From the NCBI RefSeq assembly GCF_000143415.4, contig NW_003314261.1, forward strand, positions 4,814,691 to 4,878,690: a stretch of DNA of 64,000 nucleotides, written 5' to 3'. The notes below the pieces were generated by a model. That model was given only the letters and a program-made list of their open reading frames with translations. It searched no databases and had not been told where the DNA came from. The position numbers were made by a program, and so were the translations under genes. Below are positions 2,149 through 40,291 of the stretch, piece after piece (positions within the stretch are counted from its first letter, which is position 1; each line of letters opens with the position of its first letter). The DNA is from Selaginella moellendorffii. Its lineage: Eukaryota > Plantae > Lycopodiophyta.

Positions 2149-4985
2149 CCCCCCCCCACCCCCCCCCCCCCCCCCCGACTTAAACCCAACTCTGAAAATT
2201 AACAAAAAACATACTTTGTATATGGGAAATACATCAACTTCAATGAGTGGGGAAACTACCTTTCCTCTACATCTAAGGACATTAAAACTTAAACATCCTT
2301 TAGTTGTCACCAACAAGGAAATGACTAATAAAGTGAGCCACTTTTATTGATTCGAGCATCACTCAGCTTACAAAGGAATGATACACCCTTGCCTATAGGA
2401 ATATAGGGAGAGAGTTAAAGGCTTAACTCTTTTGAGTAGAAATCAACCCCATCAGAAAGATTTAGACTAGGAGATGAAGTTGTTTATATGACCACTACCC
2501 TTTTCAAAAATGGGTCAACATAAAAGAGGCAGGGATTTGATAATGGTATCGATTGAACCCATATACCGAAGTGCCAAAGTCAACCCACCAAGATTTATCC
2601 AAAACTAACAAACAAGAGAAATGTTTAATGGAAATATATTACTTTATTGATTTCCAAGATTTATTATAAAGATTTATAAAAGTTACTTTTTATTATAATT
2701 CTCATACTCCATGACAAGCTTACAAATATGCGTAAGATTCCTAAGAAGCTCTTAAGTTGATTCATAAGTTGGGTAACCTTTCACACTTAACAAGATATTC
2801 CTTCACACAAACTTATCTTGGAAACCAAGAATCCAAGACAGTTTCAACTTCATACTTGGGTTCACTATCCACAACCTTTGATATTGGGCAAATTTCCTGT
2901 TGACGGTCAACATTTATAGTGTATGGTGCCAAAAGATTAACATAAAAAACATTATGAACATTATCTCCGCAGGAAGATCCAACTGATAGAATATATCACC
3001 AATTTGCTTTAATACTTGATAGGGACCAACAAATCTTGGTAACAACTTTTGGGATAAAGAGCTTTTAATATTCAAGTTTTGGGAAGATAGCCACACTTGA
3101 TCTCCCACTTGATAGGATACATTCTTATAATATTGATTTTTATCATGTTGATACATATCTTATCCTTATTATGTTGATATGTATCTTGAGCTTTGCCCAT
3201 CACCTCAATACCCCTAGACTAACCTTGTGCAGTTGCTCCACATAAGTCTCAATAGCTAAGACCAACATTTCAGACATTAGTTTCAGTGTAACAATTTGTT
3301 GAGGAACTCCACGAGCATTCCCTTGTAACATTTCATATGGAGGATAGCTAATAGCATTGTGAAATGTGTTGTTATAATAGATTTCTACTGTGTTTAAATG
3401 TTTAACCTAGTCGTGTTGGTCTATTATGACATAGTAATGCAGATAATCCTCAACTTGAGTATTCACATGTTCAATTTGCCTATTGGTTTGAGGATGATAA
3501 GCTATATTAAGCTTCAACTTTGGTACCGAATAAGTGGAATAATATGCCCTAAAACTTCCCTATAAATCTTGAATCTTTATCCGAGATCATTTCTTAAAGA
3601 AGACTAGAAACCCGTACTATTTTATGGAAAAAGACTGCTTGCTTTGCATTCATTATTTCCACAGTTAGAATAAAATATGCAATTTTTAATAACCGATCCA
3701 CAACCACTATCAAAGTGTCATAACCTTTAAACTTTAGGAAACAAGTGACAAAGTCAAGTGTCATACTCTGAAATAGCCATGTTAGCTTGCTTTTTAGTTC
3801 TTTGCTTACACTGCTAGCATATAGGGCAAGACATCACCTTCCATACTAAACTAGAAAAATCCCTTTTTCAATGAGGTAAGAGTCTTTCGTTTACTACCAT
3901 ATTCCACTATCAGAACATCATGATGTTCTCACAGAATCAACTATCATAGGTCCTTGGACAACAAATACAATCTTTCTTGCTTATAATAAATAAATCTGTC
4001 TTTAACTGAGAAGTGAAGTTTCACAATGGTGTGACTAACAACTTTCACTACTTTGCTACCAAGGTTCTACTTCAACAACTCCATATGATGCAACATCACT
4101 TTTGTTAACAATTCGTTTCTATATGAAGCCCAAATATCCTCCAACTAATCTAAACTGATTGCCAACATTGCCTAGAATTGAGTTGATTCAATGCATCCGG
4201 AACAATATTGTCTTTACAAGTTTATAGATGATTTTAATATCAAATGTAGTGAGCTTCTCTTGCCAACAAACTTGCTTTGGCATAAACTTTGGTTGCATTG
4301 CAAAGTAGCTCAATGTGTTATTATTTATATAAACCTTGGTATGTCCACCCAAATAGTGTTTCAAATGTTTCAACGCTAACACTATAAAAAAACATCTCTT
4401 TCTCGTGTGTTAACCATCTTTATTGGGTTTTATCTAATTTTTAGAGTAAAAAACAATGGGACACTTGTGTTGCTTTAGCATAACACCAAATGTATTATCA
4501 CAATCTTGCTGCAACACAACATCTATAACATAGCCAAATGCATCATAATGCACTTCGAAAGGTTTATTAAGATCTGGAATCTTGAGAATAGGAACCATAG
4601 TCAAGATCACCTTCAATCATACAAAAGTATATTGACAATTCGGTGTCCAATAAAACGATATACTACCCTTTATTAACTCATTAAACGGAAGAACAATACT
4701 TACATATGCAACCTTCATATGATTAACTATGTTTGCCACTATAAAATAGTTTTTTATATTGTAAATCTAGTCTTTCAAAACTTGACAATCTTGTATGCCT
4801 CTAAAATTAAGTGGTTTCAAGGTCTTGAACTTTGAAATTTGTGCAACTGGGGGCAATTGCAAAAATTCATCATCCTCAAAACTTGAAGAGGAGTTTGGTT
4901 GTTTAGATTTAGTTGGTTTAGTTGCTTTAGCTTCTTTTTTCCTCTTTTTGTTCTCTTTTTTTAATTTATGAATTTCTTTTTGCAA
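2149..4985 (-). mobile_element. Degenerate Ty3/gypsy (chromovirus-type) internal region: RNase H, integrase, chromodomain
   Basis: RNase H fragments: ILKIPDLNKPFEVHYDAFGY, LALKHLKHYLGG. Integrase C-terminus: YQVGDQVWLS...KLLPRFVGPYQVL. Chromodomain remnant EPKYEVETVLDS...EYLVK at ~2780-2860. PPT-like poly-C at 2149-2177. Many stops and frameshifts. Confidence 0.85.
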
Positions 4986-5369
4986 ATTCTCGATCTCAAT
5001 ATCTTGAGTTGTACACTACAATGCTATAGTATTAAGCCCTTCAATTTTTGACTTAGCCTTAACCTTAGCCTTTTCTATAGCATCTTTGGTAAGAGTTTCC
5101 TCCTTTTGATTTGCCTATCTAAAGGTTTTAGCATCATCAACATAGATTCTTTTCACTATCTCACTAGTTTCTTGCATGCCTCTATTAATAACTAAACATG
5201 CATGCAATGTTTTTACCGAATAGTGGAATTTAATTAATCCTTCATAGGTCGTTTTGGATCTACTAAAAAAGTCTTTACATATGTAACTTGAGTCAGAAAA
5301 TCTGATAAAAGTTAGATAGGAATTGCTAAGACATTTCCTCTGATGCCAAATGTAACACACTTAAATATG

Positions 5370-34260: not shown

Positions 34261-35946
34261 TCATACACAGACTGCGATAGGACACAGCCGTCGCAGAGCT
34301 TTCTCGGCCATCTCAGTGAGCTCCTTGTCCCCGGCCCTCTGGCAAACCCCAAGAAAAGTCTTCCACACGTCGTAGTCCGGCTCGAAAGGCATGCAGTTGA
34401 GCAGCTCTTCCGCTTGCTTGGGCTTGAGAAGCTCCATCACACAGAGATAATCTTCCAGGACCGGATACACCTCAAAGTCTGCGACCATGGATCGGAGATA
34501 GCTTGCAGCTTCGTCAGTCCGGCCTAGAGACCTGCACGCGGATACCATGCTCGTAAAGATGCCGTTGTCCGGCATCACACCCCTGAGCACCATGTTGGAG
34601 AGCAAACTCACAGCCGCTGCATACTTCCCCTTCGTGGCCAATCCAGACACCATCAAACTCCACGACTCCAAGTTCTTCTCCTCTATCGAATGGAAAACCG
34701 AGGTTGCCTCCTCGAGAGACCCCAGCCTCAAGAACGTCTTGAGAAGCAAGTTGTTCAGCTCCAGATCTCTGAGGCAAGAGCTCCACCGAAACTCCTTCGC
34801 AATCTTCCCAGCATCGTCCAAATTGGTGCACGACTCCATGACCGTGAGGAACGAGTTCTTGTCCGGCTTGACATATCTCTGGATCATCCCCTTGAAGATC
34901 TTGTACGTGTCCCCTGCCTGTCCGTTCCTGTTGTAGGCCGCCATGATCGTGTTCCACGACTCCAAGTTCCGCTGCGCTCCCATTCCCTCGAACAGAATCC
35001 TAGCCTCCTCGATCTCTCCATGCAAAGAGTGAGCACGGATCATCGCGTTCCACGCGACCGGATCCCTGTTGGGCATGAGCTTGAAGATGCGCTTCGCTTC
35101 AGAGAACATCGCCCGATCGAGGTAAGCCATGAGCAGCGTCGTCCACGGAGCCTCGTACGAAGTAGACATCTTGTTGAACACGTCCTGCGCGTCGCTGATC
35201 TCTCCAGCCTTGAGGTAAGCCTCGAACAGCGGCGTGCAAGAAGCCACACTCGGGTTCTTCATCCTGTGCACCATCTCCTTCGCCGTCGCAAGATCCCCGC
35301 TCTCGGCAAATGCTGCGATCATAGCTCCCCACACTCTCTCGTGCCCGGGCGAAGCTCGGAAGATCGTGAACGCCCTCTGCGGCATCCCGGCACGCGCATA
35401 CCCCTCGATCATCGTCACCCAGAGGTCCACTGCCGGATCCTTCGCCAGCTTGAACAGCTCCTTGGCCTCGTCCATGAGCCCTCTCTGGGTATACGCCGAG
35501 AGCATGATGTTCCAAGTCTTGACGTCCCTCTTCGCAGCACCATCGAAGAACTCCCTGGCCTCCTCGATCCTCCCGTTCACAATGTAAGCCTCCAGCATGT
35601 TGTTGAGCGCAATCATGCTGTTACTAGTCGGCAGAGTGTCATACGCGTAGCGCGCTTCCTCGGTGCTGTTGCAAACGCCGAAGAGCTTGATCAGGAGATT
35701 GCCCAGGAAGCCATCGTGGTCGTATCGCCTCTTTCTGATCAGTCCCTGGAGCCGGCGGCCCTCCTCGAGACCTTTCTCTTTGATACATCGTCGCAGGAGG
35801 AAGTAGTAAGCATCCTTGCTGCTCCCTCGATCGGATCTCGCGATGAATTCCACAGCCTCGGACAAGCTTCCCTCTTTGTAGTCACCAGCCACAGCTCGCA
35901 GCAGCGATCGAAAGTGTAAAAGCCTGGAGAGTGAGACCCGGACCAT
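34261..35946 (-). CDS. PLS-class pentatricopeptide repeat protein with a truncated E-like C-terminus and no DYW (561 aa, intronless)
   Basis: Tandem PPR motifs (e.g. RDVKTWNIMLSAYTQRGLMDEAKELF, RDPVAWNAMIRAHSLHGEIEEARILF) and E-domain start MPFEPDYDVWKTFLGVC. The N-terminus resembles an organellar transit peptide. Confidence 0.95.
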   Translation of the reverse strand: MVRVSLSRLLHFRSLLRAVAGDYKEGSLSEAVEFIARSDRGSSKDAYYFLLRRCIKEKGLEEGRRLQGLIRKRRYDHDGFLGNLLIKLFGVCNSTEEARYAYDTLPTSNSMIALNNMLEAYIVNGRIEEAREFFDGAAKRDVKTWNIMLSAYTQRGLMDEAKELFKLAKDPAVDLWVTMIEGYARAGMPQRAFTIFRASPGHERVWGAMIAAFAESGDLATAKEMVHRMKNPSVASCTPLFEAYLKAGEISDAQDVFNKMSTSYEAPWTTLLMAYLDRAMFSEAKRIFKLMPNRDPVAWNAMIRAHSLHGEIEEARILFEGMGAQRNLESWNTIMAAYNRNGQAGDTYKIFKGMIQRYVKPDKNSFLTVMESCTNLDDAGKIAKEFRWSSCLRDLELNNLLLKTFLRLGSLEEATSVFHSIEEKNLESWSLMVSGLATKGKYAAAVSLLSNMVLRGVMPDNGIFTSMVSACRSLGRTDEAASYLRSMVADFEVYPVLEDYLCVMELLKPKQAEELLNCMPFEPDYDVWKTFLGVCQRAGDKELTEMAEKALRRLCPIAVCV

Positions 35947-36039: not shown

Positions 36040-36260
36040 CTACGATGGCAAGATCCCCCACTGGTGTAGCAGGCCTTTCCCCGACGCTATCTCCAGGACG
36101 AGCAGCACAAGGACTGCTAGCATCGCCACCCTTCCGTTCCAAGTCTCGGCGCTCTTTGTCCAGCCCCATTCCCAGACTGCTACTGGAGCTGGAAGTTCCC
36201 TCCGTTGTGTATCATACGTTGCGAGTAACTCTCCTACGCTTCCGAGAGGAACGAGCGCCT

Positions 36261-36292
<32 letters not shown>

Positions 36293-38220
36293 TGAAAACT
36301 GAGAACAAACTTATAAGGAGTAGCAAACCTGTCGCGCTTCCAAGTTCGATACAGCCATTGCTCCGACGTAAGGTAGTGCTTCGATCACTGCGTCTGCCAA
36401 GTCTGTGATGAATGTGGAATCGCAGTTGAGCGCCGGAACTCGACCCCAGTGGACTATTCCCGACTCCAGCGCAAGCTCTTTGTATTCCATGTCGATCTCC
36501 TCCAATGTCTCGATGTGCTCGCTGACAAAACTGCATGCATTGCAAGAAAAGTTGGTCTTTCTTGTTCACAAAAGATTTATACAAACCTGATTGGAACTGC
36601 CAAAAGGCTCTTAATACCGTTCTGACCAAGCTCTTTTATCTTCACATCTGTGTATGGCTTTAGCCATTCGACAGGACCAACGCGGCTCTGGTATATGAAA
36701 ACAACCACAAAATGAAAAACAAAAGAGAAACATCAAAGTGAGATAAATACCTGATATGCCAAGGAGTGAACGTTCTTCACACCCCTGCTCCGCAACTCAG
36801 ACATGATCAAGTCGACACATTCTTCCATTTCCGCTTTGTATGGATCCCCGGCTTCTTCTACATACGCCACCGGAACTCCATGAGCACTAAAAAAGATATG
36901 GACCTGCAAGCAGAAACGTAAAACTTTGAGAACGCAAGCAAAGAGCTCCCTTACGTCCTCAGGATTCGGAAACTTGGAAAACTCCTTTTCTATGAGAGAC
37001 GCCATAGCTTTTACATATCCTTCCCTCTGGTACCACGAAGGAATAACAGTGTGTTGCATGTTGACTAAATACTCATCCGACCTGCAATCAAGTTAAGCCT
37101 CAAACTACGAGCAACGATCGTGGTACCTAAAGATGCTTTCTAGAAGGCGCAAACTCGAACCGCTTGTGGAAATGGAAAACTGCGGGTAGAGTGGTAGAAC
37201 GACAAGCCTCGTTATTCTATCCTTCTTTATCTGCACATAAGCTACAATTTAAACGAGATATATAAGAAGAATTTCGGCTAACCTGTTCAATGGCTTCTTC
37301 CGTGAAAGGATGCCAGTATCGCATCCCAACATATACCGTTGCAGGCAAATGCTTGGTCTCCAAAGATTTTTGGAGAGCCCTGGCCTGTGAGAAACTAAAT
37401 ACTGTAACTAAAAGAATGCGTGGATCAAGCCTTGCCTGTTCTTCAGTTATTCTTCTCAACGGAGAACCTCCACCGATAGACGCATATCCTTCGGCACTCT
37501 TGGGAGCCCGAGCTGCCGAAATAAACTCCGCAAGTGGTTTCTGGAGGAACCGAAACAGTCGAGGCAGCCGGATGATGTCCTGAAATACTTAATGTTGTTA
37601 GAAAGTACGCGAAAATAAAATCAAGGAAACACAAAGGGAAGTAAAACAAATGAAAAGAGAAAGATGTTAAACTCACAGGATCGGAGAAAAGATTAAAAAG
37701 AAAGGGTTGCACGTCTTCGAGGGAGTCGGGTCCTCCAAGGTTCAGAAGCAAAACTCCCACTTTCTCGTCCTGTGGGAGCGCCAAAGGTTGCCGAGTTTCA
37801 CTCATCAAAGGTCCCACATCCACAGTTGCCTTCGTCATAAGCTTCCATGCGCTCTTTTGTGACCGTCTGGAAGCTTGAGACAAAGATCCGTATTTGCATG
37901 CGTGGTCTCCCAAGATCAGCACACTTGGCCTATAGATCCACAAAAAGAATTCATCAATACCATCGGAAGAAACAAAACTCAAACAAACGTGGCAAGGACA
38001 CAGTCACAATCCAAAGAAGAAGAAGCTTTCAATACACGCGAGGCACAGTTCACGCTTTGGAAGAACACATACCCGGCCTTTGCCTGACGCCTGCAAGACA
38101 CCTCACCAATGCGATTCCACTGCCGTGGTCTCTCGCCTGAACAGCGGAGCAGCTATATAATTTCCAGAAATCCCCCCAAAACTTACATGGATGAATCGCG
38201 AATTCTATCTGCTGCTGCAT
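36040..38220 (-). CDS. FC2: Ferrochelatase, plastid FC2-type with a C-terminal CAB/LHC-like helix (multi-exon; start codon tentative)
   Basis: [51 protein letters not shown] and [11 protein letters not shown]. Last exon [45 protein letters not shown]. Confidence 0.95.
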
Positions 38221-38421
38221 CGCCACCGCAGTCCAGCGCGCGTCCACAAGAATGTGAGCTCGCCGCCCGCCCTAGCGCGGCATTGGCGCTGCTCGCCACG
38301 GCAAACCCTAAAATCCTGGGCCGCTGACGTGGCAAAGCGGGAGCCCCAAATGCAACGCAAGGTTGACAATCGAGAGAGATGAAATCACATTCTTTACCCA
38401 GTTAAAGTTTGGTAAACAAGA

Positions 38422-38440
38422 AGGTTCATTGAACCTAGAC
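38422..38440 (+). promoter_or_regulatory. UPE-box-like element (SLIM1/EIL3-type sulfur-deficiency element)
   Basis: AGGTTCATTGAACCTAGAC matches the first 19 positions of the UPE consensus as I recall it, AG(G/A)T(T/A)CATTGAA(T/C)CT(A/G)GAC(A/G). It lies 155 bp upstream of the LSU-like ATG. Confidence 0.8.
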
Positions 38441-38595
38441 TGGCTTGTGGCGCGAAACTTCTCCAGTCAATCAGGACCGTTGAACGCGCGCGTTTTCCAG
38501 AACGGAAGATCTCAGGTTGGTTCCCAATAAATAGGACCTTGGTTTGCGCGTAGAAACTCTGCTATTCTTACACATCGATTCCATCGCAGAGCGAA

Positions 38596-39099
38596 ATGGC
38601 AATGGCAGAGAGAGAGATCGCGCTCACGGAAGAGCTGCGATCGGTGGCGGAGAGGAATCAGAAGCTGGAGAGGGCGCTGGCATCGAGCAGGGCGCGCGAG
38701 GAATCGCTGTGGAAGAAGATCGATCTCATGAGGATCGAGGAGCGGAAGCTGGAGGAGGCGGAGGAGCGTCTGTGCGCGCAGCTGGGGCAGCTGGAGGTGG
38801 AGTACATGGAGCAGAGCCGAGCCCACAAGGAGCAATTGGAGATGGAGCGATCGGCTCACTCGCGAGATCTCCAGCGCTTGGCGGAGGAATTTGCGGCGGT
38901 GGAGCGGAGACTGGAGGAGGCGCAGGCGAAGCTCGAGCTCTACGCCAGCAATGGGGATCGCCCGCGAGAGACGATCCATCGCCAGGATCAAGGATCGCTG
39001 CTCAAGAGCTCTGGAGATCAAAAGCTCGGGAAGAATGGAGGAGGCTTGGAGAGATTGCTGGTGATGTGGTCCAAGCCGGCTGTGGAGAGTTTTGCGTGA
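38596..39099 (+). CDS. RESPONSE TO LOW SULFUR (LSU/UP9)-like coiled-coil protein, 167 aa, intronless
   Basis: LEEAEERLCAQLGQLEVEYMEQSRAH matches the LSU signature (A)EEAEE(R/Q)LCSQL(A/G)ELEVE..EQAR.Y. The N-terminal EELR..AERN..LE also fits, and a UPE-box lies upstream. Confidence 0.82.
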   Translation: MAMAEREIALTEELRSVAERNQKLERALASSRAREESLWKKIDLMRIEERKLEEAEERLCAQLGQLEVEYMEQSRAHKEQLEMERSAHSRDLQRLAEEFAAVERRLEEAQAKLELYASNGDRPRETIHRQDQGSLLKSSGDQKLGKNGGGLERLLVMWSKPAVESFA

Positions 39100-39560
39100 G
39101 ATTGATGGAATAGTTAGCTTGCATTGATAGATCATTGTACCTTTGTAGATTGGGAAGAAACAAAAATGGAAAAAAAGCTGTTGCGTGGTACCAAAAAATC
39201 ATCCATCAAGATCAAGGATAAAAAAACAAAAAATCTTGGTACTTTTCTACTTCATGCAACAAACAAGAACACCACAAAATCACTCAAGATCAACACTACG
39301 TTCTAAGGTTTTACTTTGTAAAAATATCGAAATCAGATCCAAACAGGCAAAAAGCTCACCGTCATTTTCAACTTTATTCTTCCAAACCCCACAAACTTTG
39401 ACTTGTTCCATCTTCACTCAATGCTCTTAATCTGTAGTACAAGATGGCTGAAAGATCATAGTCCCTTCATTGAAGTTCTTGGGTGGAAAGACAAAAGAAA
39501 ACCTCGCAGGCTTTGATCAGCACAAACAAGATCGTGCAAACCTTTCTCTCTCGCGCGCGT

Positions 39561-40291
39561 CTAGGCAAAAGTGTTTGGCCTCTTGGCCTTGAACGTCGTC
39601 TTGAGCTTCCGGCTGGGCGCGCGGATCTTCCGGTTCATGAGCGGGAACTTGATCTCCGAGCTGTGGAACTGCTTGGTGTTCTCGCGCTTGCAAGCACTGT
39701 CCGGGACGCTCGCCGTCTTGATGATCTGGATGCAGGGGAATCGGACGCGGTGCCGCGACGCCATCTCGTCATACATTTGCTCCACCGCGCCGTTCAAGGT
39801 GATGTCGCGGTACTCCTTGTACATGTTGTGGTACCCCGTCCGGCTCTGGTACCTCACCCAGATGCCATAGTTCTTGATCGTGGTCGGGTTCTTCTCGAAA
39901 ATCTGTGTCACGAAGTTCCAAAGTTCTCACTTGTAAGGCTCGAGAAAAGAAAGAAAAAGAAAGAACTTTACCTCGTTGATAGCGAGGATCTGGCCGTGAG
40001 ACTTCTTCACCTTCTTGAGCTTGCGAAGGAAGTACCTAGAGTGAAAGAAAGGTAAATCGAGAGAAAATGGAAATGGATCGATCGATCCAATCGACTCCAC
40101 TCACCAGAATTTGGACTTGGCGCGCACTTCGTCGCCGGCCCAGAGCTTCATCCGGTACATCTTTGGGTGCTCATTGTCGGGAGTGGGAGTAGCTCTCCCG
40201 ACCACCTGGTACTGATGAAACTGCGAGACAATGGGAGGGATCAATCGATGGATCGAGCGCTCGAGCTGCGAATTCTTACCCGGAACTTCAT
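39561..40291 (-). CDS. RPL18a: 60S ribosomal protein L18a (eL20), multi-exon
   Basis: MKFR | [13 protein letters not shown]...[17 protein letters not shown] | [20 protein letters not shown] | [33 protein letters not shown]...[10 protein letters not shown]. Telo-box at 40345. Confidence 0.97.

Follow-up and report, generated by a model that had tools for sequence, protein, structure and literature searches.

The LSU/UP9 family (LSU1-4 of Arabidopsis and UP9C of tobacco; Pfam PF24980) comprises small helical coiled-coil proteins encoded by intronless genes, and in angiosperms the presence of a UPE-box together with an LSU gene is a mark of sulfur-deficiency genes (PMC9229004, PMC4292543, PMC4206189). 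The UPE-box has been described as two overlapping, oppositely oriented TEIL binding sites of the consensus AYGWAYCT (PMC4206189). The family has been considered Spermatophyta-specific by Uribe et al. 2022 (PMC9229004), and Canales et al. 2023, who found the EIL3 family in all land plants analysed, reported no LSU homologue in Selaginella moellendorffii (PMC9917515); a 2026 review in J Exp Bot also describes the non-seed lineages as being without LSU (PMC13621318). All three argue that the sulfur-response network is older than LSU, which joined it late (PMC9229004, PMC9917515, PMC13621318). The sole earlier hint of an LSU outside seed plants that we found comes by implication from the Dollo parsimony analysis of Geng et al. 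2021, where LSU is listed among the orthogroups 'lost in the fern ancestor', which therefore implies an unnamed non-euphyllophyte member (PMC7975763).

The 64,000-nt stretch of the S. moellendorffii genome analysed here (the window) contains a 167-codon open reading frame (ORF) on the plus strand next to a divergent ferrochelatase gene (Table 1). In our view this locus is likely to hold a divergent, transcribed LSU homologue and UPE-box module, which by analogy with the angiosperm genes would be induced through EIL factors under low sulfate. As in the LSU/UP9 family, the gene is intronless, and its product may be a small helical coiled-coil protein of the same kind; 74 of its residues align without a gap to the LSU core, with RN..L, REE, EEAEERLC, G and E kept, and a candidate UPE-box lies directly upstream of the gene. 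It differs in coming from a lycophyte, whereas the family has been published as specific to seed plants, in scoring below the Pfam gathering threshold and sitting on a very long branch, and in its length: it has 167 aa, the predicted helix running on to residue 118 before a tail of low confidence, as compared with ~90-130 aa for LSUs and 84-144 aa for its database matches.

Table 1. Features of the ferrochelatase/LSU-like locus (positions in the window) and UPE-boxes of three LSU loci from other plants
Feature	Position	Strand	Remarks
Ferrochelatase CDS, FC2 type	36040..38220	-	several short GT-AG introns; PF00762; C-terminal LHC/CAB motif
Ferrochelatase exon 1	38186..38356	-	5'UTR of at least 136 nt and first 11 codons from ATG 38220
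Stretch without RNA contig cover, 158 bp	38357..38514	.	four runs; likely shared core promoter, UPE-box near centre
UPE-box-like element	38422..38441	+	19/20 published consensus positions; core 38422-38436 is a 7-1-7 palindrome
LSU-like transcript extent	38515..39188	+	contig starts 38515, 38538, 38574, 38587; ends 39175-39188; no joints
CCAAT and TATA-like ATAAATA	38524..38535	+	upstream of LSU-like ORF
CDS of LSU-like protein, 167 aa, intronless	38596..39099	+	LSU core ~residues 9-82; helix 2-118; tail 119-167 of low confidence
LSU locus L007	129 bp upstream of ATG	same as gene	UPE-box 20/20
LSU locus L002	106 bp upstream of ATG	same as gene	UPE-box 19/20
LSU locus L001, second gene	76 bp upstream of ATG	same as gene	UPE-box 19/20

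The top Pfam match of the protein is LSU (PF24980; 19.2 bits, E 0.0013, profile positions 4-52 of 53), with a score under the curated gathering threshold of 30 bits. This threshold is an operational cut-off rather than a biological feature, and it is because of this score that the protein is called LSU-like, or divergent, throughout. A phmmer search of 1.84e9 (1.84 billion) representative proteins at E<=1e-3 returned 21 matches, the query plus 20 proteins that are 84-144 aa long, with E values from 3.3e-7 (best) to 8.8e-4 and identities of 38-51% across query residues ~10-85. Every one of the 20 belongs to PF24980, and those that carry a name are RESPONSE TO LOW SULFUR proteins from Wolffia, Cocos, Musa and Mangifera. 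Since no unrelated coiled-coil protein among the 1.84e9 representatives passed the E<=1e-3 threshold, the LSU signal is not compositional. Twelve columns are invariant in the alignment of the 21 sequences (R20, N21, L24, R34, E35, E53, E56, E57, L59, C60, G64 and E67), and the EEAEERLC.QLG.LE block, C60 included, is among the invariant part.

An independent hidden Markov model (HMM), built from 149 LSU proteins with Selaginella left out, gave 47.2 bits over an ungapped 74-residue alignment, compared with -7.8 bits for the reversed sequence; of 2000 composition-matched shuffles, one reached 18.0 bits and the rest stayed at or below 4.9. Among the 867 ORFs of the window, only the LSU-like ORF matches this model (E 3.5e-14; the next, 0.13). 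A sequence-only reading of this DNA had seen here an intronless gene with an LSU signature, and had named a failure to group with the LSUs by HMM or phylogeny as a refutation. The signature is confirmed by the phmmer matches, which apart from the query are LSUs only, by the 12 invariant columns and by the HMM score, which also places the protein with the LSUs (47.2 bits, the shuffles giving 18.0 at most), and the absence of introns by single RNA contigs that run from 38538 to 39175 and from 38515 to 38929 without joints. Whether the whole sequence or residues 1-95 served as the query, word-index protein searches returned nothing but this protein, the index being too insensitive for the LSU family, and a language-model atlas returned generic animal coiled-coil families only, which is uninformative. 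The AlphaFold2 model consists of a single long helix, residues 2-118 with pLDDT >90, and then a low-confidence tail; the helix agrees with the published description of UP9C as an alpha-helical coiled-coil protein (PMC4292543).

The second signal at this locus is the promoter element. The UPE-box consensus AG[G/A]T[T/A]CATTGAA[T/C]CT[A/G]GAC[A/G] was used as printed by Uribe et al. 2022 (PMC9229004). Its first 19 positions are all matched, with zero mismatches, by AGGTTCATTGAACCTAGAC at 38422-38440 on the plus strand, while position 20 is T in Selaginella and A/G in the consensus. This 19-mer occurs once in the window, even with three mismatches allowed. At the base composition of the window, chance would be expected to yield 9.5e-6 such matches per window and 5.6e-8 per 375-bp ATG-to-ATG interval; scaled to the two-haplotype genome (~210 Mb), the expectation is ~0.03 by our own arithmetic. 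With so few matches expected, chance is excluded as the source of the UPE-box, multiple looks being allowed for. Within the element an exact TEIL site, ATGAACCT, occupies 38422-38429 on the minus strand and reads towards the ferrochelatase gene, and a second one, TTGAACCT, occupies 38429-38436 on the plus strand and agrees with AYGWAYCT at 7 of 8 positions. The sulfur-responsive SURE core GAGAC is absent from the ferrochelatase/LSU-like intergenic region.

Three LSU loci from other plants, obtained via LSU homologues, served as controls (Table 1). The tree places the protein of L001 with duckweeds and, less firmly, that of L007 with Cocos. The Selaginella box follows the same rule as the boxes of all three: it precedes the ATG by 155 bp and shares the orientation of its gene. 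The Selaginella element thus resembles the UPE-box of sulfur-deficiency genes, to which the EIL factors SLIM1 and NtEIL2 bind, in its two partly overlapping inverted TEIL half-sites, in its proximal position near the 5' end of the LSU-like transcript and in its orientation; it differs in that the candidate element sits in a bidirectional promoter common to a ferrochelatase gene. One of the control loci, L001, contains two convergent LSU genes (3001-3348 and 4936-5268) that are 1.6 kb apart, with a recognisable UPE-box at the second only.

The RNA data come from four runs, drawn from as many studies; their contigs represent RNA because they carry the GT-AG joints left by splicing of the ferrochelatase gene on the minus strand. 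Both the LSU-like gene and the ferrochelatase gene are transcribed. Exon 1 of the latter extends to 38343 and 38356 in two runs, which puts the 5' end of its mRNA at 38356 at least, and when the transcript is spliced by the observed joints the ATG at 38220 is in frame with the ferrochelatase sequence. The allelic gene has the ferrochelatase domain PF00762 on record, and the C-terminus carries a 17-residue LHC/CAB motif. Such a C-terminal motif tells FC2 from FC1, which is without it. Its presence assigns the enzyme to the FC2 type. An ACGT-core element, CTGACGTGGCA (38323-38333), which resembles a G-box or C-box bZIP site, lies in the ferrochelatase 5' region between the shortest (38304) and the longest (38356) contig 5' ends, and could serve FC2 as a light- or bZIP-type control element of its own.

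The distance from the UPE-box does not exceed 74 bp for the farthest 5' end of the LSU-like contigs, or 65 bp for that of the ferrochelatase transcripts. Two of the LSU-like contig starts lie downstream of the CCAAT/TATA-like stretch at 38524-38535, that at 38538 follows directly after its end, and that at 38515 lies upstream of it. The geometry given in the sequence-only reading agrees with these data in each respect: the palindromic core consists of two 7-nt arms that are perfectly complementary around a central T; the stated spacing of 155 bp is found between the box at 38422-38440 and the LSU-like ATG at 38596; and the divergent ferrochelatase, described as lying about 200 bp from the box, has its ATG at 38220 on the minus strand, 201 bp away, with the mRNA 5' end within 65 bp.

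Each of the two signals, LSU homology and UPE-box, is independently significant, and their coincidence at one locus makes a conserved EIL-UPE-LSU module the best reading. In this module, the LSU-like protein keeps the two conserved LSU helical motifs, RN..LE...REE and EEAEERLCxQLGxLE, within one predicted long helix, its C-terminal part being probably lineage-specific. The promoter likewise keeps a near-canonical 20-nt UPE-box, with its pair of inverted, overlapping EIL/TEIL half-sites, in the orientation and the proximal position seen at the three control loci. By analogy with angiosperms, a Selaginella EIL-family factor would bind this box, and its binding would increase transcription of the LSU-like gene when sulfate is scarce; the divergent FC2 gene would simply use the same short core promoter. 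We infer both EIL binding and sulfur responsiveness of the LSU-like promoter from this analogy.

It might be argued, in line with the sulfur-iron coupling put forward in the sequence-only reading, that one UPE-box acts both ways, inducing the LSU-like gene and at the same time making FC2, an enzyme of plastid heme synthesis, subject to control by sulfur through EIL factors. The short distances of the box from both sets of 5' ends (not above 65 bp for FC2 and 74 bp for the LSU-like gene), its place inside the 158-bp uncovered gap, its palindromic core and the exact 8-nt TEIL site pointing towards FC2 would all fit such an arrangement. Yet the box is asymmetric in its 3' part, CTAGAC, which is turned towards the LSU-like gene, just as each of the three control loci has it turned towards its LSU gene, and FC2 has an ACGT element of its own in its 5' region. 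Moreover, the LSU-like/FC2 contig depth ratio varies from ~0.04 to 0.6 between runs with no mutual tracking, although contig depth is a poor measure and this is a weak hint, and our literature search found no paper linking ferrochelatase with SLIM1. We therefore regard control of FC2 by the box as unlikely. The same doubt attaches to the combined scenario in which an EIL-UPE-LSU module was present in the vascular-plant common ancestor and the palindromic box of the 158-bp bidirectional promoter ties FC2 heme synthesis to sulfur in Selaginella; if true, it would be a cis-level link between sulfur and heme synthesis that has not previously been described.

EIL sites are also used in ethylene signalling. 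The box could accordingly be a functional EIL site that answers ethylene or general EIN3-type signals instead of sulfur, the SLIM1-type specialisation being perhaps younger than the lycophytes. This reading would be in line with the recognition of the TEIL sites of the UPE-box by the whole EIL family (PMC4206189) and with the EIL phylogeny, where the lycophyte EILs all fall in a single group (PMC9136324). However, what is conserved in Selaginella is the full 20-nt UPE-box, beyond the 8-nt TEIL site, and it is found upstream of the sole LSU homologue, a combination that in angiosperms goes with sulfur deficiency (PMC9229004, PMC4292543, PMC4206189). A role in ethylene or general EIN3-type signalling instead of the sulfur response thus seems unlikely, and sulfur-dependent induction of the LSU-like gene remains the preferred reading.

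The finding corrects the published claim on the taxonomic range of the LSU family, according to which Selaginella is without it. Probably, the LSU/UPE module is older than seed plants, gene and promoter together having arisen no later than in the common ancestor of the vascular plants. The suggestion in the sequence-only reading of a possible origin of the EIL-UPE-LSU circuit before the seed plants is well founded, since a lycophyte LSU homologue is at hand, the near-canonical box is placed and oriented as in the three control loci, and lycophyte EIL genes have been reported (PMC9136324). An earlier origin implies that LSU was lost, or diverged past recognition, in ferns and perhaps elsewhere. 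Neither the word-index searches nor phmmer of the 1.84e9 representatives found an orthologue in another identified lycophyte, fern or bryophyte, so that the dating of the family depends on a single species. A profile search with the LSU alignment gave 791 matches; the 120 listed have angiosperm names, mostly of eudicots, or are nameless, with no gymnosperm, fern or bryophyte among them. Conservation of a 19-nt regulatory element over so deep a divergence is notable by itself. With one LSU-like gene found, one UPE-box and a compact promoter, S. moellendorffii would also offer a simple system for studying the ancestral function of LSU and its wiring to EIL factors and sulfur.

Instead of descending vertically, the LSU gene may have been acquired by an old transfer from plant to plant. 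In the maximum-likelihood tree the LSU-like protein stands outside any shallow clade, and its branch is very long, at 5.4 changes per column; the tree includes no gymnosperm LSUs, is therefore unrooted and does not separate vertical descent from transfer. Finally, a chance resemblance, that is, a generic coiled-coil ORF outside the LSU family beside a fortuitous motif, might draw on the Pfam score under the cut-off and on the generic coiled-coil families of the language-model atlas, but it is effectively refuted by the exclusive matching of LSU proteins among 1.84e9, their membership in PF24980, an HMM score of 47 bits where none of the 2000 composition-matched shuffles exceeds 18, and a motif expectation of ~1e-5 per window, which make two independent signals at one locus.

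A further LSU-like protein, P0005, of 118 aa was found on three JGI metagenome contigs with a GC content of 33-37% (L004:1369-1725; also L005 and L006). Its alignment with the Selaginella protein extends to residue 117, further than that of any other match. P0005 is also the nearest neighbour of the Selaginella protein in the tree, but this is a long-branch join; no UPE-box was found near its gene within four mismatches. If the source of P0005 were a non-seed plant, this would bring such cases of LSU to two.

The 167-aa ORF at 38596-39099 (plus strand) shares 99% identity with SELMODRAFT_408074, a hypothetical protein of S. moellendorffii that most likely belongs to the other haplotype, and its 90% cluster adds a 167-aa record and the 190-aa model SELMODRAFT_402804, both from one 6.95-Mb scaffold. 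The gene order PPR - ferrochelatase - LSU-like - RPL18A is repeated on a second scaffold, GL377573.1, whose promoter sequence is identical to that of the window. Most likely, the two scaffolds represent the two haplotypes of the assembly and the near-identical LSU-like copies are alleles; the promoter being identical across haplotypes, their comparison is uninformative on constraint. Contamination is ruled out by the same synteny on two scaffolds together with transcription in four studies.

The surroundings of the locus are very compact, with ~6 kb for the four genes (PPR, ferrochelatase, LSU-like and RPL18A). Directly downstream of the ferrochelatase lies an intronless ORF of 561 aa with PPR/TPR repeats (34261-35946, minus strand). 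On the other side, RPL18A (minus strand; CDS exon ~39561-39911) is convergent with the LSU-like gene: the LSU-like contigs stop at 39175-39188, and those of RPL18A extend down to 39273-39310. In run X2, a single contig (38587-39600) spans both the LSU-like gene and RPL18A, possibly reflecting 3' overlap or read-through.
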